Positions 7,665 to 48,800 of a stretch of DNA of 64,000 nucleotides are shown one piece after another. Location: assembly GCA_028826165.1 (NCBI GenBank), contig JAPDFW010000081.1, positions 806,001-870,000 of the forward strand, in the 5' to 3' direction. Position numbers and translations under genes: made by a program. Positions within the stretch are counted from its first letter, which is position 1; each line of letters opens with the position of its first letter. This stretch comes from Anaeramoeba ignava BMAN. Taxonomy: Eukaryota > Protista > Anaeramoebae. The notes below the pieces were generated by a model. That model searched no databases. It was not told the origin of the DNA and was given only the letters and a program-made list of their open reading frames with translations.

Positions 7665-8014
7665 TTGAAATTTGTTTTATTTTGCTTTATTTTGCTTTAT
7701 TTTGTTTTATTTTTATTTTATTTTGTTGATAAATGAATAAAATTGATCTGATTTAAAATTTAATTAAAAAATTTAAAAAGAAAAGGAAAGGAAAAGTAAG
7801 CAAAAAAAAAAGAAAACTTATTATAATTATTTTTATAACAAAGAATTGGGGGATCCTAAGAAAAAAAATGTTATTTTTTTAATTTAAAAAAAAAATTTTA
7901 TTTTATTTTTTTTTCTCCTTTTTATTTTTTTTTCTCCATTTTTAATTTAATTAAAAAAAACTTTTTTTCATTTTTTTTCTTTTTAATTTTTTTTCCTTTT
8001 TAAATTTTTTTTAA

Positions 8015-11000
8015 ATGAAATTTTTTCTTCTTTTTTTCTTAATAATTTCCCAAATTTTAGCTAAATATTGCGAAGACACAACTTGTCAACAAGAAATATA
8101 TGACACAACTAGCTATAAAGTTGGTGATGATTCTTGTGTTTTTATTCATGTAGAAAATAGTACTCATGAAACAAGAGCTATTTTTTATCCTATTGTTGAT
8201 CAATTAAGCATTCTTAATATTCCCGGCTGTGTGTCATCATTTTATCTTAAATGAAATATAATTATATATATAAATATAAATATAAATATAAATATAATTA
8301 TAAATATAAATATAAATATAAATATAAATATAAATATAAATATAAATATAAATATAAATATAAATATAAATATAAATATAAATATAAATATAAATATAAA
8401 TATAAATATAAATATAAATATAAATATAAATATAAATATAAATATTAAATATAAATATTTAATATAAATATTTAAATATAAATATAAATATAAATATAAA
8501 TATAAATATAAATATAAATATAAATATAAATATAAATATAAATATAAAATATAAATATAAATATAAATATAAATATAAATATAAATATAAATATAAATAT
8601 AAATATAAATATAAATATAAATATAAATATAAATATAAATATAAATATAAATATAAATATAAATATAAATATAAATATAAATACAAAACATAAACATAAA
8701 TATAAAATAAATATAAATATAAAATATAAAATATAAATCTAAAACAAAATATAAATATAAACATAAATAAAATATAAATATAAATAAAAAAACATAAAAA
8801 AATAAAAATAAAACATAAATATAAAACATAAATATAAATATAAATATAAATATAAATATAAATATAAATATAAATATAAATATAAATATAAATATAAATA
8901 TAAATATAAAATAAATATAAATATAAATATAAATATAAATATAAATATAAATATAAATATAAATATAAACATAAAATATATAAAATATAAATATAAAATA
9001 TAAAATAAATTATAAATATAAATACATATAAAATATAAATATAAATATAAATATAAATATAAATATAAATATAAATATAAATATAAATATAAATATAAAT
9101 ATAAATATAAATATAAATATAAATATAAATATAAATATAAATATAAATATAAATATAAATATAAAATATAAATATAAATATAAATATAAATATAAATATA
9201 AATATAAATATAAATATAAATATAAATATAAATATAAAATATAAATATAAATATAAAATATAAACATAAATATAAATAATAAATATAAATATAAACATAA
9301 AACATAAATATAAAAAAAAATAAATATAAATATAAATATAAATATAAATATAAATATAAAATATAAATATAAAATAAAAAATAAAATATAAATATAAAAA
9401 AATAAAAATAAATATAAATATATAAAAAAAATATAAATATAAAATATAAATATAAATATAAATATAACATAAATTATAAATATAAATATAAATATAAATA
9501 TAAATATAAAACATAAATAATAAATATAAAATCTAAATATAAATATAAATATAAATATAAATATAAATATAAATATAAATATAAATATAAATATAAATAT
9601 AAATATAAATATAAAATATAAATATAAATATAAATATAAAATAAATATAAATATAAATATAAATATAAACATATAAAATATAAAATATAAATATAAATAT
9701 AAATATTAATAAAATAAAAATAAATATAAATATATAAATATAAAATATAAATATAAAATATAAATATAAAATATAAACATAAATATAAATATAAATATAA
9801 AATATAACATAAACATAAATATAAAATATAAATATAAAAATAAAAATACATAAAACAAAAAACAAAATAAACATAAACAAAACAAAAATAAAAAATATAA
9901 ATATAAATATAAATATAAATATAAATATAAATATAAATATAAATATAAATATAATTATAAATATAAATATAAATATAAATATATAAATATAAATATAAAT
10001 ATAACATAAACATAAAAATATAAATATAAAATATAAATATAAATATAAATATAAATATAAATATAAATATAAATATAAATATAAATATAAATATAAATAT
10101 AAATATAAAATAAACATATAAAATATAAAATAAAAATAAAAACATAAAATATAAAATAAAATAAAAATATAAAAATATAAATATAAAAATATAAATATAA
10201 ATATAAATATAAAATATAAAATAAATATAAAAATAAAAATAAAATAAAATACAATATAAAATAAATAAAATATATATAAATATAAAATATAAACATAAAA
10301 TAAATATAAATATAAATATAAATATAAATATAAATATAAATATAAATATAAATATAAATATAAATATAAATATAAATATAAATATAAATATAAATATAAA
10401 TATAAATATAAATATAAATATAAATATAAATATAAATATAAATATAAATATAAATATAAATATAAATATAAATATAAATATAAATATAAATCTAAATATA
10501 AATATAAATATAAATATAAATATAAATATAAATATAAATATAAATACAAATATAAATATAAATATAAATATAAATATAAATATAAATATAAATATAAATA
10601 TAAATATAAATATAATTAATATTAAATTTAAATCAAAATTAAAAATTAATTTTATTAAGCTGGTTGTGAATATGGAGCTGACGTAAATACAACAGTTTAT
10701 ATTAGTATTAACGGAATAAACTCCACAAAAGTACATGTTTATGATACTCAAAGTTTTATTGGGTCATATACAGTATTCATAAAATTAGATCAAGGAAAAG
10801 TTGAAAAATTAATGTGGGATGACAGTTTAAGTTGTAGTGATTGTAATGGAGGATGTATTGATGGACTTTGCGCCTTGAAAGTAAGCGATTATAATAAATG
10901 TTATGATGAATCTCGTGATATCAAGGTATTTGTTGCTTGGATTGGTAGAGATAGTGATAAAAGATATCTCACAAGTTCTAATTCTGTTCCTTCTCGATTT

Positions 11001-28159: not shown

Positions 28160-31100
28160 ATGAACCAAAAAAAACAACAAGAAAAATTAATTTTCTTTGA
28201 TAAAGCAGCATTTCTTTTATTTAAATTATTCAGTTTGGTTCTTGTTCTAATTTCATTTATATTAATTGTAGTGATTATTTATTTCTATTTTACATTTATG
28301 CTTCCAATGACAGCATCAGAAAACATAATAATTTTCACAATTCAAACAACAAGTGCAATTTGGATTATTTGGGGAATTTCATACAATTATGTCAAGGCAG
28401 TATTTACAAAACCAGGTTATCCACCACCAAATTTAATCACAAAAGAAGAACTTAAACAACTCAAAAAAAGATACAAATTAATAAAATCAAATCCTCATAA
28501 TTCTCGTGCTTTAAAAAAAATTCCTTATTGTCCGATCTGCAAAAATTTTAAACCAGAACGTACTCATCATGATGCGCTTTCTGGAAAGTGTGTTCTTCGA
28601 ATGGATCATTTTTGTCCTTGGATTAATAATACTGTTGGCTATAAAAATCATAAATTTTTTATTCTTTTTATGGTTTATCTTATTTTGGGTTGTATTTATG
28701 CTGCGATTTTATCTTCTTCCGCTTTTTTCTTTGATATTGGTCTTTCCGATCATCCTGTTGATCATCAAGGTCCTCTTATTTTTGTTTTTATTACCTGTTT
28801 AGTTGTTATTATTGGTGTTTCTTTTTTGGTTGGATTTCATTTTTATTTGTTGCTAACAAATCAAACCACAATAGAATTTTATCAAAATCAATTACCAAAT
28901 CCAAAATCAAAAAAAGTAGAATGATTTTATTATTAAAATTAATATTAAAAATTATTATTAATCAAATTGAAATTATTATTAAATTTATTATTAAATTTAT
29001 TATTAAATTTATTATTAAATTTATTATTAAATCTATTATTAAATCTATTATTAAATTTATTATTAAAATTATTATTAAAATTATTATTAAAATTATTATT
29101 AAAATTATTATTAAAATTATTATTGATTTTATTATTAAATTTATTAATAAAATTATTATTAAATTTATTATTAAATCTATTAAAATTATTATTAAAATTA
29201 TTAAAATTATTATTGATTTTATTATTAAATTTATTAATAAAATTATTATTAAATTTATTATTAAATCTATTATTAAAATTATTATTAAATTAAATCTATT
29301 ATTAAAATTATTATTAAAATTATTATTAAAATTATTATTAATCAAATTGAAATTAATTATTCCAATTTTTATTCCACTTTTATTCTTATTTTTTTATTAA
29401 AATTATTATTAAATTATTATTAAATTAAATCTATTTATTAAATTTAAAAATAAAAATTATTAAAATTATTAAAATTTTATTTTTATTAAATTTATTTTTA
29501 AAATGATTATTAAATCTATTATTAAAATTATTATTAAATCTATTATTAAAATTATTAGCAAAAAAATTTAAATTATTATTATTAAAATTATTCAGTTTAT
29601 TATTAAAATTATTTTATTTAAATTTATTATTAAATTTATTATTTAAATCTATTATTAAAATTATTATTAAAATTAACATTATTAAAATTATTATTAAAAT
29701 TATTATTAAAATTATTATTAAATTGATTATTAAAATTATTATTAAATTTATTATTAAATTTATTATTAAAATTATTATTAAATTATTATTAAAATTATTA
29801 TTAAAATTATTATTAAATTTATTATTAAAATTATTATTAAAATTATTATTAAATTGATTATTTAAATCTATTATTAAATTTATAATTCTAATTATTATTA
29901 AAAATTATTATTAAAATTATTATTAAAATTATTATTAAATCTATTATTAAATTTATTATTAAATCTATTATTAAATTTATTATTAAAAATTATTATTAAA
30001 ATTGATTATTAAATTTATTATTATTAAAATTATTATTAAAATTATTATTAAAATTATTATTAAATTTATTATTAAAATTATTATTAAAATTATTATTAAA
30101 ATTATTATTAAAATTATTATTAAAATTTATTATTAAATTTTATTATTAAAATTATTATTAAAATTATTTAGGTAAAATTATTTTTGTTTTTATTACTTTT
30201 AATTTATTATTAAAATTATTATTTCATTTTTATTTCCACTTTTTTTTATTAAATTTATTATTAAAATTATTATTAAAATTATTAAAATTTATTATTAAAT
30301 TTATTATTAAAATTATTATTAAATTTATTATTAAAATTATTATTAAAATTATTATTAAAATTATTATTAAAATTATTATTAAAATTATTATTAAAATTAT
30401 TATTAAAATTATTATTAAATTTATTATTAAAATTATTATTAAAAATTATTATTAAATCTATTATTAAAATTATTATTAAAATTATTATTAAATCTATTAT
30501 TAAAATTATTATTAAATCTATTATTAAAATTATTATTAAATTGATTGTTAAAATTATTATTAAAATTATTAAAATATTTTTAAAAATTTATTATTAAATC
30601 TATTATTAAAATCTATTATTAAAATTATTAAATTGATTATTAAATCTATTATTAAATTTATTAAAATTATTATTAAATTCATTATTAAAATTATTATTAA
30701 ATTGATTGTTAAAATTATTATTAAAATTATTATTAAAATTATTATTAAAATTATTATTAAAATCTATTATTAAATCTATTATTAAATCTATTATTAAATT
30801 GATTATTAAATCTATTATTAAATCTATTATTAAATTGATTATTAAATTGATTATAAAATTATTAAATTATTATTAAATTATTATTAAATCTATTATTAAA
30901 TCTATTATTAAATTTATTATTAAATTGATTGTTAAAATTATTATTAAATTTATTATTAAATCTATTATTAAAATTATTATTAAATTTATTATTAAATCTA
31001 TTATTAAATCTATTATTAAATTTATTATTAAAATTATTATTAAATCTATTATTAAATCTATTATTAAATTGATTATTAAAATTATTATTAAATTTATTAT

Positions 31101-31459
31101 TAAATTTATTAAATTGATTATTAAATTTATTATTAAATTTATTATTAAATTTATTATTAAATCTATTATTAAATTTATTATTGATCAAATTTAAAATTAA
31201 TTAGAAATAATAATGATTAATTATTTTTCTCTTTTATTCTTATTAAAAAAAAAACAAAAAAAAAAAGGGAAAAATAAGAAAATTTGATTTAGGAAAAAGA
31301 AAAAACTTTGATCAATTTTTTGGAACAACGAATCAATATTGGTTTAAGTTTTTATTTAATTTTGAAAACCCGAAAGGAGATGGAATTCATTTTATAAAAG
31401 CAGAAAAGAATTTAAATTATCGTTATTTAAATATTGGTGATTCGAATGTTATTATTTAA
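28160..31459 (+). CDS. DHHC-family palmitoyl acyltransferase (DHFC variant); intron 28916-31267
   Basis: Four TM helices, KPG motif, CPICKNFKPERTHH...CVLRMDHFCPWINNTVG, NQTTIE. Last exon FDLGKRKNFDQFFG...PKGDGIHF. Confidence 0.9.
28930..31185 (+). repeat. ~2.3 kb degenerate 12-nt (ATTATTAAAWYT)n array filling the DHHC intron
   Basis: Directly visible tandem array. Confidence 0.9.
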
Positions 31460-31642
31460 AATAAAAAAATTAAATAAAAGAATTTAAATAAAAAAAATTT
31501 TTTTTTTGCTTTTTATTTTTGTTTTTGTGGGCAAATTAAAAATTTTAATTAAAAAAATAAAAAAAATTTTTATTTGTTTTTTTTTTCATTTTTTTTTTCA
31601 TTCATTTTGGAATTTATTTTACTTTCTTTCTTTTAATTTGAA

Positions 31643-34083
31643 ATGAAAATTGTGATTTTTTCTTTAATTTTGTTACTTGTGGCAACAACTCTTGCCCACG
31701 GTAAATATTTTATTTAAAAACACATAAAAACACATAAAAACACATAAAAACACATAAAACACATAAAACACATAAAAACAACTTTTTTTTTATTTTTTCC
31801 TTTTTTTATTTAAAATATAATTACGTCATAAATTAAAACAAATAGTCAAAAAAACCACATTCAATATATAATTAAATTGAATAAATAAATTAAAATAAAA
31901 TAAATTAAATAAAATTGAATAAAATAAATTAAATTGAATAAATAAATTTAAATTAAATTAAATTAAATTGAATAAATTAAATTAAAATAAATTAATTAAA
32001 TTAAAATAAATTAAATTAAAATAAATTAATTAAATTAAAATAAATTAAATTAAATTAAATTAAATTTAAATTAAATTAAATTAAATCGAATAAAATAAAA
32101 TTAAATTAAATTAAATAAAATTTAAATTAAATTAAATTAAATTAAAATAAATTAAAATAAATTAAAATAAATTAAAATAAAATAAATTAAATTAAAATAA
32201 ATTATTGGAATAGTGAAATAATTTTTTGACAAGCAAAAAAAATAATTATTTTCTAATTTGGTTTTTTATTTAAATTTTTTATTGGTAATTAGGTAACTTA
32301 AAAGATCAACCACCAGCAGGAATTCAATGTACTGCTTGCGAAGAAGTTATGAAACTTGTTGAAAACTTTATGGAAAACCCAAAAACTGAAGATGAAATTG
32401 AGAAATTCTTAGAAGATGTTTGCAATATGCTTCCATCTTTCTTATCAGGACCTTGTGATAGTTTAGTTCAAGAATATCTTCCACAAATCATTAATTTGAT
32501 TGTTAATGGAGTTACACCTGATCAAATTTGCTCAATGATTGGATTATGTGCAACACCACCAAAAGCACCAAAAGGAATTGAATGTACAGTTTGTGAAATG
32601 GTTATGGAATTATTAGATAATTACTTACAACAAAACCACACTGAACAAGAAATTGAACAATTTTTAGAAGGAGTTTGCAATATGCTTCCATCTTATTTAT
32701 CAGGACCTTGTGACAGCATGATTCAAGAATATCTTCCACAAATTATCAACTTAATTGTTAATGGAGCTTCACCTGATAAGGTTTGCTCAATGATTGGATT
32801 ATGTGCAACACCAAAAAAACCAATTGGAGGAGAAATTGAATGTACAGTTTGTGACGAAGTTATGAAACTTGTTGAAAAATTTATGGAAGACAAAAGAACT
32901 GAAGATGAAATTGAGAAATTCTTAGAAGATGTTTGCAATATGCTTCCATCTCCTCTTAATACAATTTGTGATGGATTAATTGAACAATACATCCCAGTTA
33001 TTGTTAATCTTCTTGTTAATGATTATCCACCTGATAAAATTTGTGCTCTTATTGGATTATGCACATCTGAAACCGCACCAAAAGGAATTGAATGTACTGT
33101 TTGTGAAATGATTATGGAATTATTAGATACCTTCTTAAAAGATAATCATACAGATCAAGAAATTGAACAATTCTTAGAAAATGTTTGCAATATGCTTCCA
33201 TCTTTCTTATCAGGACCTTGTGATAGTTTAGTTCAAGAATATCTTCCACAAATTATTAATTTGATTGTTAATGGAGTCACACCTGATCAAATTTGTTCAA
33301 TGATTGGATTATGTGCAACACCAAAAGCACCAAGAGGAATTGAATGTACAGTTTGTGAAATGATTATGGAATTATTAGATAACTTCTTAAAAGATAATCA
33401 TACTGATCAAGAAATTGAACAATTCTTAGAAAATGTTTGCAATATGCTTCCATCATTCTTATCAGGACCTTGTGATAGTTTAGTTCAAGAATATCTTCCA
33501 CAAATTATTAATTTAATTGTTAATGGAGTTACACCTGATCAAATTTGCTCAATGATTGGATTATGTGCAACACCACCACCAACACCAAGCATATTCAAAG
33601 GAATTGAATGTACAGTTTGTGAAATTGTTATGAAATTATTGGATGGTTTCTTACAAAATAATTCCACACAACAAGAAATTGAACAATTCTTAGAAGGAGT
33701 TTGCAATATGCTTCCATCTTATTTATCAGGACCTTGTGATAGTTTAATTCAAACATATCTTCCACAAATCATTAATTTGATTGTTAATGGAGTTACACCT
33801 GATGAAATTTGCTCAATGATTGGATTATGCACATCAGAAACAAAACCAAAATCAACAAAATGCACCATTTGTGAAGAAGTAATGAAGTTGATTGATTCAT
33901 TTTTAAGTGATCAAAAGAACTGAAGCTGAAGTTGAGAAAGTTTTAGATATGGTTTGTAATTATGTTGGACCTTATAAGACTGATTGTGATGATTTGATCA
34001 ATTATTTCTATGATGATTTGGTTAAATGGTTTGTTAGCGATTTCCCACCAGAACAATTCTGCACTGATGTTAAGATTTGCTAA
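31643..34083 (+). CDS. Multi-saposin (SAPLIP, prosaposin-like) precursor with 7 saposin-B domains; intron 31701-32292; 1-nt frameshift ~33913
   Basis: Signal-peptide exon MKIVIFSLILLLVATTLAH. Seven CxxC...C...C...C...C units. The seventh is completed in the shifted frame (RTEAEVEKVLDMVC...FCTDVKIC*). Confidence 0.9.
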
Positions 34084-36781: not shown

Positions 36782-39700
36782 TTAATTTTCATTTGAATTT
36801 TCAGATTTAGATTTAGATTTAGATTTGGATTCAGATTTGTTTTCATTTGAATTTTCACTTTCATTTTCATTTGAATTTTCACTTTCATTTTCGCTTTCAT
36901 TTTCACTTTCACTTTCATTTGAATTTTCATTTGAATTTTCAGATTTAGATTTAGATTTAGATTCAGATTTAGATTTAGATTTAGATTTGGATTCAGATTT
37001 AGATTCAGATTTAGATTTAGATTTAGATTTAGATTTAGATTTAGATTTAGATTTGGATTCAGATTTGGATTCAGATTTGGATTTAGATTTAGATTTAGAT
37101 TTAGATTTAGATTTAGATTTAGATTTAGATTTGGATTTAGATTTGTTTTCATTTGAATTTTCATTTTCATTTTCATTTTCATTTTCATTTTCATTTTCAT
37201 TTTCATTCGAATTTAAATATTTAAGAATAATTTCCATTCGTCGATTTAATTGCCTGGAATTTGGATTAACAATTTGTTTCGTTTGATTTTGATTTATATT
37301 GTTCTTTTGATTTTTTTTCTTTCCATCTTTATAATCTTGATCTGAATCTGAATTTGAATCTGAATGTGATTTTGGATTTTTTTCACTAACTGTTTGATTT
37401 TGGGAATTAAGATTATCAAGTAATCCAATTTTTGAGTCTTTTTTAATACCTTCCCAATTTCCATATCCATGCAAATAAACACCAACAAATAACAGAGAAT
37501 CTTCACGTTCACCCCAATTAGAATTCCAACTTGGTTGTACAAGAGAAGTTCCAATTCGGAATTCTTCAATTGGATTTTTTAATTTTGATATTTTTTGTTC
37601 AATTATTTCTAAAACTCCTATTCGATTTAATAAATCTGATGCGTTAACTTCAATCCCACTCTTTAAACGAAGAACTACATCTTTATTCATGGAAATTTCA
37701 TCTAACGATCTTGGATTCATTCCCTTTTTTTTGCTTGATTTTTCTAGTGGAACAAATTCAGAGTCAGAATCAAAATTTGAATCTTGATTTGAATTTTCTT
37801 TTTTCTCTTTTTCTTCCTTTTCTTTTTGTCTTTTTTGCACAACATTATTTCTTAAATTCACGCATTCTTTCGATTTGCTAACTAATTTTTTTGCGAATTT
37901 TTCGACAAATGATTTTGGAAGAGATGAAAGTTTAGCATCTGAAATGAGATTTTGGATTCTTTGTGAAGAAATGCCAAATTTCATAATTGCTCTGATAAGA
38001 GCTTTTGTTTGTTTTTCAGTAAGTTTTTCTTTATGTTTGTGTTGTGTTTGTGTTTGTGTTTATGTTTATGCTTATGTTTATGTTTGTGTTTGTGTTTGTG
38101 CTTATCTTTATGCTTATGTTTATGTTTATGTTTGTCTTTTTTTTTATTATGATGATGCTTTGCTCTTTTTGTTTTGCTTTTTTTCTCATCTTGATTTTTT
38201 CGTTTCTTTTTATTTTTTGTGTTTTTATTTTTGTTTTTAAAATATTTCATCTTCTCTTCATCAAATAATATCTTTGATTCACTCAATCTGTGATTTTTTT
38301 TTGATTTATGAGAACGAGTTCTTCCAAAAAAAGAAAATTGATCTGGACGTTCGTCTTTTGAAATCAAATTTTCCCAATAATTTCCTTCATCTTTCTCTTT
38401 TCTTCTCTTTGAAAAATCCTCAATTTTAAACGAGTTTAGAAATTCGGAGCTTGGATTCATTTCTTTGTCATCGCGTTTCTCAGCACGAGCAAGAATATCA
38501 TCAATATTCTCATTGATAGCTGCTTCAAGTCTTTTCAACTCTTCTTCGTCATAGCTAAAATAGTAATCGTCGTTAAAGGAAGAATTTTTCTTCTGGGAAT
38601 TTTTGAATAATTTTTTGGTGCCAAATTTCAAAATCTCATCGACATCTTCCTTTTTCAAAGTGGATTTTTTCTGGTTAAGAATAAGTTGTCCAGAAGTATC
38701 CATTTGTTGAATAACAAGCTGGTCAAGAACCATTTTGCGTTTTGCTCTTTCGAGAATTTCTTCCTCGATTGTATCTTTTGTGATAAATCTGTAAATATTC
38801 ACTGCCTTTGTCTGTCCAATTCGATGACAACGAGATTCTGCTTGCAAGTCATTTTGTGGATTCCAATCAGAATCAAATATGATAACTGTATCCGCAGTTG
38901 TTAAGTTGATTCCAAGTCCTCCTGCGCGTGTTGAAAGGAGGAAACAGAAATCTTCTGATCCTTCTTTATTGAAATGATCCATTGATCTTTGCCGCTCGTC
39001 TCGAGACATAGAACCCTGCAATCTTTGATACGGATACCGTTTTCGTGCTAAATATTCTGCAAGTATATTCAAACTCCTAACCATTTGAGAAAATATTAAC
39101 ACTCTTCTTCCACTTTCCTTGAGTTTTGATAGGAGTTTGTCAAGAAGAATGAATTTTCCTGATGAGTTGATTAAATTTACAATTTCTTGTTTTTCTTGTT
39201 TGTTCTTTGTTTTAGATATTTTTTGTTTTTTTGCTTTGGTTTTTTTGGTGTGTGATTTTTTCTTGTGCAATTTTTCGTTTTGGTTTGTTATGTTTGTTTG
39301 GGATGAATTTGAGGAATTATGAGCTGGAAGTGGTTCTGTTTGCATTTTTTCAATATCAATTTCAACAATATCAGAATCAGAGTCTGAATTTGAGTCTGAA
39401 TTTGAATTTGAGTTTGAATTTGATTTGGATTTTGAATTTGATTTTGAATTTGATTTGGATGTTGATTCTTTTTCAGATTCGCTTTCATTTTTTGATTCAG
39501 ATTCACTTTCAGATTCACTTTCATTATCATCTTTAGAATTTGCTAAATGAGAAAAATGATCTCGTGCTCCTTCAAACAAAAATGGATGATTGCAACATTT
39601 CTTAAGCTCGGAAACAATATTTAATAAAGAAACTTTTTTGGATTGAGCTCCTTTGTTTAGTTCATGGAAATTTTTGGTTATTATCCATCGATAATACCGT

Positions 39701-42700
39701 TTCTGGAAAGGAGAAAGTTCAATCCTCAAAATCATCTCTGTTTTTTTTGGAAGAGATTTTTCAACATCAATTTTCAATCGGCGTAAAATATGAGGCCGAA
39801 TCTCTTCATGCAAATTTTCAATTTGAGATCTTTCCTTTAAATTCTGATATTTTGATAAGAAATTTTCTAACGAGGAAAATTTTTTGGGTGCAATAAAATG
39901 GAGAAGACTCCATAATTCCTCAATTGAGTTTTGAATTGGTGTTCCTGTGATTAGCAATCTGTTTGTGGAATTGAATTTTTGAAGAGTGATATGAATTTGG
40001 GATTGATTGTTCTTTAATTTTTGGGCTTCGTCGACAATTAAATAATTCCACCGAATTGATCCAAGAATTTTTTTATCAAATCGCACAATTTCATAAGTTG
40101 TAAGTAAAATATTAAATCGGATTTTGGAAGTTTTTTGATCCAGAAATTCAAAATCACGGATTAAAGACCTGCTTTGTTTGTTTCCTATATAAACAACGGC
40201 ATCTAACTCGGGAGCCCATGTTGCAATTTCCTTTTGCCATCCCGAAATTGTTGAAAGAGGTACAACAACTAAATGAGGCCCGTAATTCTTGTATTCATGA
40301 AATAGAAATGTTAAGAGTGAGATTGTCTGAATTGTATTGTGTGTCACAATATAGTCATCAGTAACATATAATTTTGATGGCGAGGAAATACTGATGCACT
40401 GCGCCATTTTTATTCCAACATATTCAATACTTGAAATTTTGCGATATAGTCGATTTTTTTGTATGCAGAATTTATTTGCATTTGTGATTGTTTTTTGATT
40501 TAAATTTATTATTCTAATTTTATCATAAATTTCTTCTATAAATGTTATTTGAATAAATGATTTTTTAGTTTCATTTTGAGCAAAAACAATTGATCCAAGT
40601 GACCAGAAAATTTCGCAAACATAATCCACAAGTTTGTTTAATACATTGCCACCTTTTTTTACTAATTCCAAAAAAATGGTTTGATTTTGAGAGTCATATC
40701 CTGTTCCAAAAATATCGATAATAGCTTGAAGAAACGATAAACGATACTCCATTTTATGAAATTGCATCTCTTCTGCAAACTTTATATCTTGTTTATCGCT
40801 TGTGAATATTTGAGAAATGATATCACTTGAATCTAAGGCTTTCCCTTCATTTTCAAGCGAGATTTGCAATAGGAAGGTTTGATTCCCATTTTCAAGAGGT
40901 TTTCGTATAATTTTAATTTGTTTGGGCAAATCCTCAAATCTTCTTAAACAAGTTTCAGTAAGTTTTTCTGGAATTTCCATTTCTATTTTGTGATATCGAT
41001 CATGAGTTAAATTATTGTATTCCACAAAATGGCTTGGAGATGTTAAATAGATCCCCATAAAATAACAAAGGGAATGGAACTGTGAGATTGAAAGTTGGGA
41101 AGGAAGAGCTTTTTTGAGAAAAGAAACAGGTTGAACAACAGGAATAAACAAATCTTTTTCAAGAATCAACTTTCGAATATTTGAAAGTGTTAATATTTCT
41201 TCTTTTTGAAATAAAGATTTTGTTTGTGAATCAGTTTGTAAGTTATAAAAGACTTTCCATAAATGCTGTTCACAACATTGAGTTGAGCCTCCATCTTCAA
41301 ATGAAACTTTATAAATGGGAAGATTGCCTTGTGGATAAATACCAGTGATTTCTGTCAATTTACCATTCACATCACAAATTTGTTGTCCAACATAAACATC
41401 TTCCATTCTAATCCAAGAATTTGCACCTAAAATCATTGCATCCAAAGGTTGAGCCTTTTTTTATTCAAAAAATAAAATTATTTTAATAAAATTATTTTTA
41501 ATAAAATTATTTTTTTTTACTTTTCCTAAACCCATTTCATCAGCAAGAATGCATTGAGTGCCATTGCACCAATTATAAAAAAGCCAATTCAATCCTTTGA
41601 GTTGATAATCACGCAAGGCACCGCCTGCAATATAGCTTGGTTGTGTTTGGATTTGAGTAAAATCGGGACGGCTTCTTATGTATTGATTGGCATAATATTG
41701 ATTCAAATTATTATAAAGCTCATTTCTTTTTTTGTAATTCTCAATCACATCCTTGAACTGAGTGATTTCTTCCTCGTCTTCCCACGTGCAATGATCGTAA
41801 GGCAAGCCTGACCATTTGACAAGATATTGTTTATTTCTGTCAGGTTTTTCATCCATAACAGATACAATACGCTCAGCAATAGCATAAGTTGAATATATTT
41901 CCTTTTGCATTTCCTTCTGAATCATCAATCTCTCAACATCTTCAGGTGAAGCTGTTTTTTTCCATTCAATTTCAGCGTTCAGATTTTTGATATAATTGAG
42001 TAATTTTTTATTTCCACGAAATTTCATAAGAAATTCTTGAGTTTCCCAGGTGTTGTGTATATGCGCCCAGCCTTTCCAGTTGATAAGATACTGGCGCACA
42101 ATAGCATTGTTCTCATCAATAGCATCACGATAGTCCATCACTTGTTCTATTTCCTCCTCATAGTCGCCTACCTGGTGATAAGATATCGGTTTTTGGGTTT
42201 GCTCTTCTGTTTGCTCGTCCTCATCTTCATCATCGTCTTCAAAATGGTAGCTTTGTCTGTATCCTGTTGTTTTCTGTCTTGTTTGATATCTGCGATTTCC
42301 TTCTTTTGCGTGTTTTGTTGTTTCATTTATTGATTTACCTGTTTTTTCTTGATCCGATTGCCGATTCTTTTTGGATTTTCTTGAATTTTTTTCAATATTT
42401 TTTTGATACTCATTTGGATCTTGATTTTTTGATTCCATTCCATTGAAAAGTGAGCTAGTTTGGTGAATCTGGAAATAATCTTCAAGATTTTCATGTTCCA
42501 TAAAAGAAAAGAAATCAAGACTTTCCTTTGTAGTTTCATTGAAATCAATTATTGAATCCTCCTGATTGATTTTGGGCTGATGAAGTGATGGCAATAGTGG
42601 TTCTTCCTGTTTAGATAATGTTTGTATTCCGTTCTGATTCAATTGCGTTTCTTGATTGGGATCATTTTCTGTAATTTCTTCTTTGCTTGACAATTGCATT

Positions 42701-43404
42701 TCTTGATTTTCTGCATAATTTATGTTCTCAATTGTTTTTGAGTTGATATTTTCTTTTTCTTTTTCTATTTCTATAGAAACGTTATCTTTCTCGTTTTTTG
42801 TTTCAATAATTTGGTTTGAAAATTCTTTGAGATTATTTTTAGGAGCGCTTGGGAATTTATGCATTTTTTGGTCCAAATTCGATATTTTTGATGGTTGGTT
42901 TTTTTTTTTAAAAAAGGAATTTGATTGTTTATTTAGAAATATATTCTGCTTTTTTTGTTGTGGGTTTTGTTTTGTAAAGTTGATGGGTGTTTGATTTTTT
43001 TGTTGGATTATTGATTGACGTTGCTGTGAAAATGGAGAGTTTGTTAATAAAGGAAAAATAGGATTTGAATGATTTTTAAGTTTTTGAATGTTAATATTTT
43101 TTCCAAAAGGATTAGTTTTTTTGATTGGATTTTTGATTTGTATTTTTGGTTTTAGATTGAATGTTGATTTTTGATTTGTATTTATATTTATATTCATTTT
43201 TTGATTGAATGTTGATTTCTGATTTATATTTATATTCATTTTTTGATTGAATGCTGATTTTTGATTTGTATTTATATTCATTTTTTGATTTGTTTCAATT
43301 TCCATTGCATTTTGTTTTTGAGTATTTGTTAAATTATTATTATTTGAAACTACTTTTTCTTTTGATTGACTTTTCATATTTTGTATAAAAGGTTTTGATG
43401 TCAT
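36782..43404 (-). CDS. CHD1: CHD1-type chromatin remodeller (double chromodomain, SNF2 ATPase, SANT/SLIDE DNA-binding domain) containing an intein; intron 41455-41520; 1-nt frameshift ~38042 in the (HK)n repeat
   Basis: [54 protein letters not shown]|[62 protein letters not shown] and [21 protein letters not shown]. Confidence 0.95.
40336..41454 (-). mobile_element. Class 3 intein (373 aa) with degenerate LAGLIDADG homing endonuclease, inserted in the CHD1 Walker A motif
   Basis: Begins AQPLDA. Block B CCEQHLW, block F AQCISI, block G IVTHN|T. Removing it restores GLGK-TIQT. HEN remnants [21 protein letters not shown] and IFWSLGS. Confidence 0.93.
41455..41520 (-). other. 66-nt spliceosomal intron exactly at the N-extein/intein junction
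   Basis: GGA AAA | GTAAAA...TAAAAAAAG | GCT CAA CCT. Phase 0, with an in-frame TAA. Confidence 0.9.
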
Positions 43405-43606
43405 AATAATAATTATTATTATTATTATTTATAATTATAATTATAACTAAAATTATAATTATTATTTTTTAAATACAATTTAAAATAAAAACAAAAAAAA
43501 ATGAAAAAGAAAAAAATGAAAAAAAAAAAAATTTTTTTTATTTATTACTAAATTTTTCAATTAAATTATTCATTTTTATTATTTATTATTTTATTATTTT
43601 TTTAAT

Positions 43607-45415
43607 TTAAAAAAAATCAAAAATTGATTTAATTCTTTCTAAAAAAGTTTTGTTTTTTTGAATTTCTTTTAAAATAACCCAATGTTCTGAATAATATTTT
43701 TGATTTAACCAAGAAAATAAAGATAAAAGTGGATTTAAATTTTCCCGAATACATTTTTTATGTTCGAAAATTTTCCAATTATCAAATCGAATAATAGAAT
43801 CGAAATCAACCATATTTTCTTTTTTGTTAATATGCAAGAATATAAAATCGCAATCCAAAATATCACAAAAAGCATCCAATTTTTCAAAATGTGATTTTTC
43901 TTTCAATAAACCATATTTACTGTTAAGAAATGGTTGATCTTCTTTTTTTCCACTTTTTGGATTCAATAACATTTTGATTTTAAAATTCTTCTTTGGAACA
44001 AAAAAACTACTTGGGAAATATTTCCAATCTTTCAAAATGCAAAAATTCTTTTTTTTATCATTTTTTTTTGGATCGTTTTCCGATTCCAAATCTGCTAAAT
44101 TAGCCCAAGTTCTCGTTGCACATCCAGTTTTAAAATGCAAGGAGAAAATACGCAAAAAGAAAAACAAAAGAATAAAAAAAATCAAGATCGAAATTAAGAT
44201 GATGAATTTTTTATTTTGATGCTGATCTTTTTCTGGTTTACGAAGCTCTTTTAATCTTTTCAAATTCTCTTTGATCAGTTTATGTTTTTGGGGAACAATC
44301 TCCTTATTTGATATGTTTTGTTGGATCTTGTTTTCTTCTTGATTTTGAATCAGATGATCCAATTTTTGTTGTTGAAATTCAAATACTTCATTCCTTTCTG
44401 TTTGGTTTCCAAAAATATTATTTAATCCAAAAAAGGAACTAATTCCAATCGAACTTGAAAGAAGAAGATATGGATAAGAAACATACTCAAAATCAACTCC
44501 AAATCCAAAAGGATTAAGGAAGAAAATTAACGGAGAAACCAAATTGATAAAAAAGAAATTTTTATTTGATTTTAGTTTCTGAAAAACAAACAAAATCCCC
44601 AAAAAAGAAAAAAACAAATGAATATGGAAATCCCACAAAAAGTTCCATATTCCTTCTTTCTTGAGAACTAATGCCATTTTCTCAAAACGATGGGTCGCAA
44701 ACCATAAGTTATTTAGAGATTGAAAAAAGGATTGTTTTGTCAAAAAAGAAACGAAAAATCCAAACAAAACAAAAAAACCAAACCAAAATAAAAAGGAGAA
44801 AAGGAAAATTTTGATGAAAGAAAAAAATTTTTTGCCTGCTAAATGAATACAATAAGGAATCCAAAATAAAAGTAAGATTTTTTGACCCGAAAAGGAAAAA
44901 AAAAGTAAAGAAAAAACAAAAAGCGATTCGTTTTGATTCAAGAAGGCTCCAAAAATCAGAGAAGATGAAATCATTAGAAAAGATCCAGGAACAATAGACC
45001 TACTTGCCTTTGCAATTGCAGTATTGAAAGAAAGAAAAAGAATAAAGAAAAATGTTGGAAAATTGCCAAAAACACGTTTAACACCAGAAACAAAATAACC
45101 CAAAGAAAAGGCAGAAAAACAAGCCATAGAAGAACGAAGAATGAAAAAAATAGTTATTTTATTAACAGATAATTTTGCAAAAGGAATTGCAATTAAAGAT
45201 AAAATGCAGTGGAAGAAATTTTGTGTATAATTTGTATTTTGTTGAAATCCAAACCCATAAATCAAGGAATGTATTGGTTCTAAATTATTATAAACCTCGT
45301 TTGAATCAACAGGAAAATCAAAAACAGAATAAACAAGAAATGAAGTTAAAAGAAGAAAAAGTGAAAAAGGAATTGAAGTCAAAAAAGAAATTAAAACAGA
45401 AAAATTATTGTTCAT
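43607..45415 (-). CDS. Divergent ALG9-like (GT22) multi-pass mannosyltransferase homologue
   Basis: DSNEVYNNLEPIHSLIYGFGFQ (cf. ALG9 DCDEVFNYWEP.H...G.G.QTWEY), many TM helices, luminal CILKDWKYFPSSFFVP. Confidence 0.7.
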   Translation of the reverse strand: MNNNFSVLISFLTSIPFSLFLLLTSFLVYSVFDFPVDSNEVYNNLEPIHSLIYGFGFQQNTNYTQNFFHCILSLIAIPFAKLSVNKITIFFILRSSMACFSAFSLGYFVSGVKRVFGNFPTFFFILFLSFNTAIAKASRSIVPGSFLMISSSLIFGAFLNQNESLFVFSLLFFSFSGQKILLLFWIPYCIHLAGKKFFSFIKIFLFSFLFWFGFFVLFGFFVSFLTKQSFFQSLNNLWFATHRFEKMALVLKKEGIWNFLWDFHIHLFFSFLGILFVFQKLKSNKNFFFINLVSPLIFFLNPFGFGVDFEYVSYPYLLLSSSIGISSFFGLNNIFGNQTERNEVFEFQQQKLDHLIQNQEENKIQQNISNKEIVPQKHKLIKENLKRLKELRKPEKDQHQNKKFIILISILIFFILLFFFLRIFSLHFKTGCATRTWANLADLESENDPKKNDKKKNFCILKDWKYFPSSFFVPKKNFKIKMLLNPKSGKKEDQPFLNSKYGLLKEKSHFEKLDAFCDILDCDFIFLHINKKENMVDFDSIIRFDNWKIFEHKKCIRENLNPLLSLFSWLNQKYYSEHWVILKEIQKNKTFLERIKSIFDFF

Positions 45416-45887: not shown

Positions 45888-48800
45888 TTAAAATTCTTTC
45901 AAGGTATCATAAACTGGATTTTCTTTGAAATATTCAACCATTTTCTCTAATTTTTCAGCAACCTTTTCTGGAACAAGTTCAAAATGAGCAAAAATTTTAT
46001 TTGCAGGAGCAGAAACACCAAAAGTATCAATTCCCAAAGAAAAATGAGCGTATTTAAACCAAGTTTGGGTTGCACCAGCTTCAACAGAAAGGATGGGTAT
46101 TCCTTTTGGGAAAACAAGCCTCTTGTAATCAAGGGGTTGTTGAGCGAATAGTTTTTCAGCAGGCATTGAAACAACACGAACAGAAACACCTTTTTTAAGT
46201 AGAATTTGAGCAGCAGAAAAAGCAAGAGAAACTTCACTTCCAGTTGCAACAATAATAGCGGAAAATTTCTCGACTTCTGGATTAAGAACATAAGCTCCTT
46301 TAGCAACAGCTTCGACACTAGTTCCCTTAAGATGAGGAACGCCTTGACGAGTTAGTGCAAGAACTGATGGAGTGTTTTCAGTTGAAAGTGCATATGCATA
46401 AGCTCCAGAAACTTCGTTTCCATCACATGGTCGGAATAAAAGCAAATCGGGAATTAATCGCAACATTCCAAGCGTCTCAATTGGTGCATGTGTTGGTCCA
46501 TCTTCTCCAAGTCCAATTGAATCATGTGTCATCACATAAATCACCTTTGCTTTCGACATTGCGGATAAACGAACTGATGGTAATCCATACTGGATAAAGT
46601 TCAAAAATGTCGCGCAATAAGGAACCAATCCTCGAATTCTGCAGGATGCAATTCCGTTGCAAATCGCCATCATAGAATGCTCTCGAACCCCAAAACGTAT
46701 GTTTTTGGCTTCATAATTTTTAGGTGTAAAATCTCCACTTGAAAGCAAATAGGTATTATTGCTTGGTGATAAATCTGCTGAGCCTCCAAAAAGTCCTGGT
46801 ATTTTACTGTTTAAGGCATTCAAACATTTTCCTGAAAGTGACCGTGTTGCAACAGATACTCCAATGTCTTTTTCTCCAAATTTTGGAAGGATTTCAAGTA
46901 GTTTTTTATATTCAAAAATATCTCCATGTTTTTCTTTGTCAAATGTATAAAATTTGTTGTTGTTTTCCTCTGAGAACATCGATTCTAATTCTCCAGCAAG
47001 TTCAGGATGGGTTTTGCGATATTCACCAAATAGCTTATACCATTCTTCAACTTTGAGATTGTTTTTTTTTTGGACTTCTTGATAGAAATCTATCACTGAT
47101 TTGTCAACTTCAAATAGATTTTTCTGGATCAAGTCCCAATTCCTTTTTAAGTAATTTTACATTTTCAGCTCCCAATGGTGTTCCATGAACTTTTGATGTT
47201 CCTTGCCAAACTGATCTGAATCCTATTGTTGTGCGTACTGAAATGAGGGATGGTTTATCTGTAACTTTTTTAGCTTCAAGAATAGCTTTGTTGATTCCAT
47301 CATAATCAGCATCTCCTTTTTCAACTGTTTGAACATGCCAACCTAATGCCTCGAATCTGAGATTAACATTTTCAGTGAAAGTTATTGAAGTTGAGCCATC
47401 GATAGTGATATCATTTGAATCGTAAAGAACTATTAAGTTTCCTAATTTAAGGTGACCAGCCAAAGATGCTGCTTCATTTGATATACCTTTTTTTAAGGAG
47501 AATATTAAAAGAATTTTATCGAATTTTGAAATGAATATTTATATTTATATTTATATTTATATTTATATTTATATTTATATTTATATTTATATTTATATTT
47601 ATATTTATATTTATATTTATATTTATATTTATATTTATATTTATATTTATATTTATATTTATATTTATATTTATATTTATATTTATATTTATATTTTAGA
47701 TTTATATTTATATTTATATTTATATTTATATTTTATATTTATATTTATATTTATATTTATATTTATATTTTAGTTTTATTTATATTTATATTTATATTTA
47801 TATTTTATATTTATATTTATATTTATATTTATATTTATATTTATATTTATATTTATATTTATATTTATATTTTATATTTATATTTATATTTATATTTATA
47901 TTTATATTTATATTTATATTTATATTTATATTTATATTTATATTTATATTTATATTTATATTTATGTTTATATTTATATTTATATTTATATTTATATTTA
48001 TATTTATATTTATATTTATATTTATATTTATATTTATGTTTATATTTATATTTATATTTAGATTTATATTTATATTTATATTTATATTTATATTTTATAT
48101 TTATATTTATATTTATATTTTATATATTTGATTTTATATTTATATTTATATTTATATTTATATTTATATTTATATTTATATTTATATTTATATTTATATT
48201 TTAGATTTATATTTATATTTATATTTTATATTTATGTTTTATTTATTTTTATATTTATATTTATATTTATATTTATTTTATATTTATATTTATATTTATA
48301 TTTATATTTATATTTATAATTATATTTATATTTATATTTATATTTATATTTATATTTATATTTATATTTATATTTAGATTTATATTATATTTATATTTAT
48401 ATTTATATTTATATTTATATTTATATTTATATTTATATTTATATTTATATTTATATTTATATTTATATTTATATTTATATTCATATTTAGATTTAGATTT
48501 TAAATTAAAATTCGAATGGCAAATCCGTAATAAGAACAATAATATTATATTTTTTGTAAATAAAACAAACCTTCCATTAAACAACCATCACCAGCAAGAC
48601 AATAAATATGATTATTAAAAATATCAAAATTATCTTTATTAAAACGAGCAGCTAAATGTTTTTGAGCCATAGCAATACCAACAGCATTAGCAAAACCTTG
48701 ACCTAAAGGACCAGTAGTAACCTCAACACCTTTTGTTAAATGAGCTTCAGGATGACCAGGAGTAATAGAACCAATTTGTCTGAACTGCATTAAATCCTCC

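Follow-up and report, generated by a model that had tools for sequence, protein, structure and literature searches.

A spliceosomal intron and a predicted class-3 intein meet at the Walker A lysine of a CHD1-type gene in Anaeramoeba ignava

A 64,000-nucleotide (nt) stretch of the Anaeramoeba ignava BMAN genome (GenBank assembly GCA_028826165.1, contig JAPDFW010000081.1, positions 806,001 to 870,000 of the forward strand; C71:806001-870000 in our numbering of the 42.8-Mb, 147-contig genome, which has about 20% G+C), hereafter the window, to whose first letter positions refer unless a contig is given, contains a CHD1-type gene of the SNF2 ATPase family. In this gene a 66-nt spliceosomal intron is followed directly by an intein, and the two together separate the Walker A (P-loop) lysine from the threonine that follows it. 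As an earlier note on this DNA had proposed, active CHD1 requires RNA splicing and then protein splicing to restore the GKT motif at one codon boundary. The boundary after the Walker A lysine, written GK| below, is a hotspot for introns and inteins in this genome. The reading that we favour, and hold to be rather likely, is that an ordinary intron and a class-3 intein met at a boundary favoured by both, and that the intron is not private to the intein.

Anatomy of the CHD1 gene and splicing of its intron

On the minus strand, exon 1 closes at 41521 with GAA ATG GGT TTA GGA AAA (EMGLGK). The GT..AG intron comes next, and after it GCT CAA CCT TTG GAT opens an insert of 373 codons (41454-40336), which begins AQPLD, ends ...YIVTHN and is followed by TIQTISLL. 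The sequence confirms this arrangement, which had been described in the earlier note. The parts of the gene, all on the minus strand, are as follows.

41521-43404, minus strand: exon 1 or N-extein, 628 codons, with a low-complexity stretch at the N-terminus, then two chromodomains and the first part of the SNF2 ATPase, to ...LADEMGLGK
41455-41520, minus strand: spliceosomal intron, 66 nt, GT..AG, phase 0, 95% A+T, with an in-frame TAA
40336-41454, minus strand: predicted intein of 373 amino acids (aa), class-3 type, recognised by PDB matches, library search, alignment and fold; its LAGLIDADG endonuclease domain is degenerate
41257-41265, minus strand: intein block B, His64-Leu65-Trp66, with the Trp of the class-3 Trp/Cys/Thr triplet (WCT), aligned with HLW/HQW of gp41-1 and DnaB inteins
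41035-41073, minus strand: LAGLIDADG motif 1, degenerate, with ...YLTSP for ...LLGDG and Ser139 for the catalytic Asp, in the columns around Y131 and G134
40699-40734, minus strand: LAGLIDADG motif 2, degenerate, with ...IIDIFG for ...LMDTDG and Phe249 for the catalytic Asp, in the columns of L242, D247 and G250
40396-40398, minus strand: intein block F, Cys353, the predicted initiating nucleophile, aligned with the block F Cys of 6rix and 6riz
40336-40344, minus strand: intein block G, Thr371-His372-Asn373, invariant in the alignment and followed by Thr+1 of the C-extein
37981-40335, minus strand: C-extein, with the remaining SNF2 ATPase from TIQTISLL, Helicase_C and low-complexity tracts
36785-37984, minus strand: probable continuation of the gene, an open reading frame (ORF) with the CHD1/Hrp3 helix-turn-helix domain (HTH; SANT-SLIDE region), one base out of frame

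Exon 1, the intein and the C-extein were searched as separate pieces. In Pfam, exon 1 matches Chromo (5.9e-24, in two stretches) and, at 41518-41607 (C71:847518-847607), positions 1-31 of PF00176; the C-extein matches SNF2-rel_dom (1.2e-73, profile positions 31-289) and Helicase_C (2.2e-27). The SNF2 profile of 290 positions breaks at position 31 before the insert, restarts at 30-31 after it and is contiguous once the insert is removed. HTH_CHD1_Hrp3 is found in the last ORF (Pfam, 5.9e-14). The combination of tandem chromodomains, SNF2 ATPase and CHD1/Hrp3 C-terminal HTH leads us, on domain content, to assign the gene to the CHD1 subfamily of SNF2 ATPases. Between the C-extein and the HTH ORF the frame changes near 38040-38060, in a Lys-His (AAACAC) repeat in which one A is apparently missing; the change, placed within 38030-38070, is either an assembly slip in the low-complexity tract or a real frameshift, and the comparison with the public run described below skipped repeats, including this one. 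The full-length protein has about 2,100 aa or more, and the 66-nt intron is the sole intron seen across about 6.6 kb of coding sequence.

The intron starts GTAAAA, ends AAAAAG and is made of three tandem units of about 15 nt. Reading through it adds 19 codons before the TAA, hence the 647-aa frame of the ORF at 41461-43404, which is the product that had been foreseen for intron retention. Splicing to the following AG (41428-41427) would break the frame, so that only excision of the 66 nt preserves it. In its GTAAA start and A/T richness the intron resembles 15 other GK| introns of the genome (87-96% A+T), and the published A+T content of introns in this genome is 91.9%.

Evidence for splicing of the junction at 41455-41520, for which the earlier note had asked for RNA reads, comes from one public run (X1) that contains this stretch and whose contigs we placed on 37900-43500. 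One contig, with a depth of 8.8, joins 41521 to 41454 (placed as 41453 to 41520) and skips exactly 66 nt; with the cut moved by +1 the joint has CT..AC ends, which is GT..AG on the minus strand. The flanking contigs terminate precisely at 41454 and 41520, with depths of 18.6 and 38.7, a pattern that would be expected of a graph holding both joined and unjoined forms. The library type of X1 is not on record, and the joined form is most likely complementary DNA (cDNA); an intron-less DNA allele at about 30-50% of the depth is unlikely, because the A. ignava culture reportedly consists of one isolate, which may be haploid.

The other X1 joints in 37900-43500 were set aside, as they lie in low-complexity tracts and have sides of 21-27 nt. 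A splice that would remove intron and intein together from the RNA was also considered and rejected, since the intein ends in ..AAT and not in AG; use of the next AG, three codons past the intein, would remove TIQ, and no such joint is among the X1 joints. Over the same 5.6 kb (37900-43500) the X1 contigs show 12 single-base differences from the assembly, seven of them in a 1,247-nt contig over 41520-42766, so that X1 represents another strain or allele, or the assembly holds residual errors.

The putative class-3 intein

Searches of the insert against Pfam and NCBIfam gave no match. A PDB sequence search with it returned gp41-1 and DnaB inteins, and an exhaustive, profile-free search of a protein library returned 8044 proteins at E<=0.001, the best matches being bacterial and phage SNF2, DnaB, PhoH, FtsH, ClpB, RecA and terminase proteins. 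The homologous insert of these bacterial and phage matches also stands after the P-loop GK and starts AQPL or AAPL; the nearest relatives of the CHD1 intein are 25-31% identical to it over the full length. An orthologue of this CHD1 from Anaeramoeba was not found in two protein libraries, in which the best matches were bacterial or phage proteins. Within the genome, a search with the CHD1 intein found about 12 related inteins, and a search with a second intein about 35 more.

All 14 aligned homologues start AQPL straight after the P-loop GK. Because the alignment fixes that first codon (41454-41452), the AG of the intron, at 41455, abuts the intein without a gap, and the exact contact that had been claimed from the letters alone stands. 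Invariant in 14 of 14 inteins are A1, Q2, P3 and L4, H64, L65 and W66, Q352, C353 and I354, and T371, H372 and N373. What splicing requires is present in the sequence, namely the conserved blocks, the C-terminal His-Asn and a Thr nucleophile at +1. The AlphaFold model has a predicted local distance difference test (pLDDT) score above 90 at residues 1-70, 90-110 and 340-373, which form the splicing domain, and Foldseek matches it to PI-SceI (2e-14) and TliVMA, and to the class-3 DnaB intein 6bs8, 6rix and Prp8 inteins at about 1e-4. By alignment and modelled fold, the insert is predicted to be an intein with a HINT fold that is able to splice. The non-nucleophilic Ala1, together with the Trp66/Cys353/Thr371 triplet, marks it as a predicted class-3 intein, with the chemistry of that class. 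In the block numbering of Tori and Perler, the WCT triplet is said to comprise the Trp at block B position 12, the Cys at block F position 4 and the Thr at block G position 5.

The endonuclease domain is modelled with low to medium confidence. Since Ser139 and Phe249 occupy the positions of the two LAGLIDADG catalytic acids, the homing endonuclease is probably inactive, and present-day homing is therefore unlikely. From its sequence, the intein looks like an old, fixed resident of the gene.

GK| introns and intein junctions across the genome

Seven SNF2-type genes were seen in the genome by profile search. Their states at the GLGK|T boundary are listed here, with the contig as a label.

CHD1 (window): intron, then intein
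C9, CHD1-type: GT..AG intron of 64 nt, no intein
C58, CHD1-type: GT..AG intron of 299 nt, no intein
C82, Mot1-like: GT..AG intron of 66 nt, no intein
C62 (L019), SNF2 gene free of an intein: intron about 5 nt upstream of the boundary, in the last Gly codon
C39, SMARCAL1-like: Cys1 intein at GLGK|, no intron
C64, SNF2-type: state not assignable

The genes on C9 and C58 encode chromodomains and, downstream, the CHD1 HTH domain; their mutual identity is 66%, and they share 47-48% identity with the CHD1 of the window. The intein-free paralogues read GLGK|TIQT or GLGK|TFQT. As an intron at GK|[ST] is thus present in paralogues that have no intein, the CHD1 intron is not a private by-product of its intein. 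The SMARCAL1/HARP-like gene (L027, C39:25154-30151) runs from ...DDMGLGK|CVHKNT... to ...LGHN|TLQAIG, in an ORF that stays open for 1650 aa.

Introns at this boundary extend well beyond the SNF2 family. A genome search for the pattern GxxxxGK followed by GTAAR gave 46 matches, compared with 27 for a reversed control. Twenty of the 46 were fetched and examined: 14 are true P-loop genes with a phase-0 intron right after GK, and six are kinases reading GKV. Twelve of the 14 introns are at intein-free loci (11 distinct, as two are copies) and two precede inteins, and the genes concerned are these.

Intron at GK|, no intein: a Rpt-like proteasome gene, a ClpB-like gene, a GPN GTPase, a kinesin, Rad51 and an AAA protein
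Intron at GK|, no intein: six small-GTPase loci, which are five distinct genes, one of them duplicated
Intron at GK|, then intein: MCM9 and SRP receptor alpha

When the pattern was shifted one codon later there were no matches genome-wide, and with a shift of two codons there was one, which is unrelated. Against about 740 uninterrupted Walker A sites as the denominator, the observation of at least 12 GK| introns has P<1e-7. Sixteen GK| introns compared with each other show no similarity beyond A/T richness (z<=3.5), in a test for an introner-like (transposon-derived) family that low complexity limits, and the CHD1 intron matches that of its paralogue (z=1.95) no better than it matches introns of unrelated genes; this lack of similarity neither supports nor excludes a common origin.

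We also read the N-junctions of 28 distinct P-loop inteins. An intron ends exactly at the junction in three of them (CHD1 and the two genes below), a 3' splice site lies 5 nt upstream of the intein in another two, and a likely 3' splice site lies no more than 40 nt upstream in 10 of the 28.

C71:951200-953000 (L035): MCM9, with a 317-nt intron ending exactly at intein Cys1
C75:282200-284000 (L038): SRP receptor alpha, with an 89-nt intron ending exactly at intein Cys1
C18:56365-60360 (L002) and C13:368907-372707 (L056): a Brr2/ASCC3-like helicase gene and a second helicase-like gene, both intein-bearing

The MCM9 and SRP receptor alpha inteins are 38% identical and start C[LF]AKNT..., unlike the CHD1 intein. 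The abutment of intron and intein therefore recurs at least three times in this genome, as part of an association that has been published (see below). In the two helicase genes the sequence reads ..ag|GA AAA|intein, which puts the likely splice site, 5 nt upstream of the intein, in phase 1 of the Gly codon, and the intron of the intein-free SNF2 gene on C62 occupies the same -5 position.

The earlier note had considered that the coincidence in CHD1 might be uninformative, through a phase-0 GLGK|T intron that is widespread in CHD genes without inteins and a lack of enrichment at other intein junctions. The intron is indeed widespread in intein-free genes (the CHD1-type C9 and C58, the Mot1-like C82 and at least 12 other P-loop loci), whereas the supposed lack of enrichment does not hold, in view of MCM9, SRP receptor alpha and the 10 of 28 junctions with a likely splice site within 40 nt.

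Origin of the junction and relation to known systems

These observations point to the following course of events. In expression, the spliceosome would join ...GLGK to the Ala1 codon of the intein, and the translated precursor would then excise the intein by way of a branched route through block F Cys353, cyclisation of Asn373 and attack by Thr+1, leaving GLGK-TIQT. In evolution, P-loop inteins of the CHD1-intein family always insert after GK, and the intron would either predate the intein, being shared with paralogues, or have arisen in parallel at a favoured site. That the two elements adjoin would follow from their common preference for this hotspot, whose attraction for introns may stem from endonuclease pressure, in line with the published barrier idea (PMC10710043). 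The earlier note had named three possible origins of the intron, in repair of the homing break, by co-conversion with the intein, or before it; of these, an intron that pre-existed or is independent of this intein fits best, and an intron older than or independent of the intein is also the most economical account. An intein that came first, followed by intron gain at the favoured site, is a possible alternative.

Several points weigh against this preference for a shared hotspot. If the intron came first, the intein must have been inserted in a non-canonical way, because a split site could not be cut and the intron would be lost through ordinary homing. Within this one species, descent from a common ancestor and parallel gain look the same in the three CHD1-type genes. 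The controls shifted by one and two codons leave the exon-end context AAA|GT uncontrolled; a control with another exon-final lysine, VAIK|GTAAR, gave no matches genome-wide, and it lacks power because real VAIK sites in excess of background number only about 60. The splice sites 5-39 nt upstream of inteins were judged by eye and without RNA, from the presence of AG, A/T-rich sequence and upstream stops, and the RNA junction in CHD1 itself comes from a single run of a single study. Finally, introns exactly at the boundary occur in three of 28 P-loops with an intein and in about 12 of 752 without one (Fisher P=0.014), which hints at a direct link to inteins beyond a shared site preference.

That difference in rate also speaks for a competing account in which the intein primed the intron, the 66 nt being a repair scar or filler from imprecise repair of the homing break, or an intron co-converted with the intein. 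We regard this as a possible but distinctly less probable origin. The exact junctions involve two unrelated intein families (class-3 in CHD1, Cys1-type in MCM9 and SRP receptor alpha), the two helicase genes with a 3' splice site 5 nt upstream point the same way, and the short tandem units of the CHD1 intron are what templated insertions would be expected to leave. A precedent has been proposed for Bathycoccus PRP8 (PMC3749507), and A. ignava is reported to be capable of end joining (PMC10710043). The junction introns, for their part, are alike only in A/T richness, and the 25-31% identity of the intein to its nearest relatives, together with its dead endonuclease, would make the event old and its traces lost. 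For the GK| introns of intein-free genes, the same account would have to invoke end-joined cleavage scars or remnants left after intein loss, which we think doubtful: families with such introns (SNF2, kinesin, RecA/Rad51, AAA+, ClpB-like) also host inteins of this kind here or in bacteria, but the five small GTPases, from a family in which no intein was seen here, have the intron too, and precise intein loss is thought rare. In its general form, the idea would be that GK|[ST] introns are products of homing-endonuclease attack, breaks that were imprecisely repaired or end-joined and turned into introns, a proposal to which we give limited credence; it is equally a minority view that the three genes with abutting elements (CHD1, MCM9 and SRP receptor alpha) preserve a state where the birth of an intron went along with intein insertion and did not prevent it.

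A decayed earlier intein, turned into an intron and then joined by the present intein as a second invader, is very improbable. Intein decay has been raised for coincidences of intron and intein sites (PMC10710043), and pseudogenised copies that contain an intein exist in the genome, but the 66 nt consist of tandem A/T units with no coding trace, a second homing event would lack a contiguous target at a site that an intron splits, and tandem inteins at the CHD1 site were not seen. Even less credible is an artefact, by which the 66 nt would be kept in the RNA (as two genes or a pseudogene) or the X1 joint would be an intron-less DNA allele. The unrecorded library type and the single contig with the joint leave room for it. 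The joint, however, has exact GT..AG ends and keeps the frame, a single SNF2 profile is split into halves on either side of the insert, the intein residues are clearly constrained, the same architecture is present at 14 other P-loop genes, and a spliced gene model is implicit in the published listing of an intein for a chromodomain SNF2 protein (PMC10710043); a DNA polymorphism at the depths seen would also sit poorly with the culture described above.

Much of the setting has been described. The A. ignava genome has a reported A+T content of 80.65%. In the accessible text of Gallot-Lavallee et al. 2023 (PMC10710043), its 103 inteins are catalogued, one of them from a chromodomain SNF2 protein; the P-loop inteins of 'cluster 1' of Anaeramoeba are described as class 3, with atypical N-termini, all of them in P-loops; and introns that lie at intein sites or close to them, in paralogues free of inteins, are interpreted as a homing barrier. 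The genome analysed here agrees with that account in its 19-20% G+C and its dozens of inteins. The intein itself and the association of introns with intein sites are thus already published, while GK| introns of families that do not host inteins (Rab, GPN, Rpt) are not counted genome-wide in the part of the paper available to us. Its main text deals with introns where inteins are absent and does not mention intron and intein at one boundary in CHD1, although its Fig. 5 may show the MCM case.

The nearest parallel in another lineage is PRP8 of Bathycoccus (Monier et al. 2013; PMC3749507), where a spliceosomal intron and an intein occur at one codon as mutually exclusive alleles and where intein-primed intron gain was raised. 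CHD1 is similar in that both elements use the same codon of a nuclear gene, but differs in that they adjoin in one gene and both must be removed. With class-3 inteins of bacteria and phages (mycobacteriophage Bethlehem DnaB, M. smegmatis DnaBi1 6bs8, MchDnaB-1 6rix) the CHD1 intein shares the Trp/Cys/Thr signature, the non-nucleophilic first residue and P-loop insertion after GK, and many bacterial SNF2, DnaB, PhoH, FtsH and ClpB proteins carry AQPL...THN inteins at GK|. It stands apart from them in its eukaryotic nuclear host, the junction intron, the 25-31% identity and the degenerate endonuclease motifs. Within A. ignava, SRP receptor alpha and MCM9 are like CHD1 in having a phase-0 GT..AG intron (89 nt and 317 nt) that ends at the first codon of a P-loop intein, but their inteins begin with Cys1 (class-1 type) and have no sequence kinship with that of CHD1 beyond the HINT fold.

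At the CHD1 locus a gene still in use has both an intron and an intein at a single codon boundary, so that a simple picture of the two as mutually exclusive, or of the intron as a barrier, does not fit, and the order of events is constrained. Taken alone, the case adds little, because the intein has been catalogued, the association was published in 2023 and the intron also occurs in intein-free paralogues. Its value lies in the genome-wide pattern, in which GK| introns number at least 14, compared with none at the boundary one codon downstream, and three of 28 P-loop inteins have an intron abutting them. The origin of new spliceosomal introns is a long-standing question, and the intein sites of A. 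ignava offer dozens of dated landmarks at which introns accumulate. If the reading of these introns as products of endonuclease attack were true, it would provide a concrete, site-specific mechanism by which another selfish element drives spliceosomal intron gain.

Some further observations concern other inteins of the genome and the surroundings of CHD1. A frameshifted, stop-ridden copy of an intein-bearing DEAH helicase gene (L010, C68:372500-376500) accompanies an intact one at C68:461500-465500, and an intein-bearing dynein AAA1 gene has a duplicate in the same state (L014, C113:181700-184995); both are pseudogenised copies that contain the intein. Two P-type ATPase paralogues (L071, C55:172287-175499; L072, C102:19899-23123) carry Cys1-family inteins at the phosphorylation motif, inserted after a Lys (..ASDK|C...) at a site that is not a P-loop. 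Upstream of CHD1 on the minus strand of the window are an Alg9-like mannosyltransferase ORF (43610-45415) and a transketolase-like ORF with the pyrimidine-binding and C-terminal domains (45891-47132). The G+C content, about 20% on average over the window, falls to 4.6% at 8001-10000 and to 8.1% at 30001-32000.

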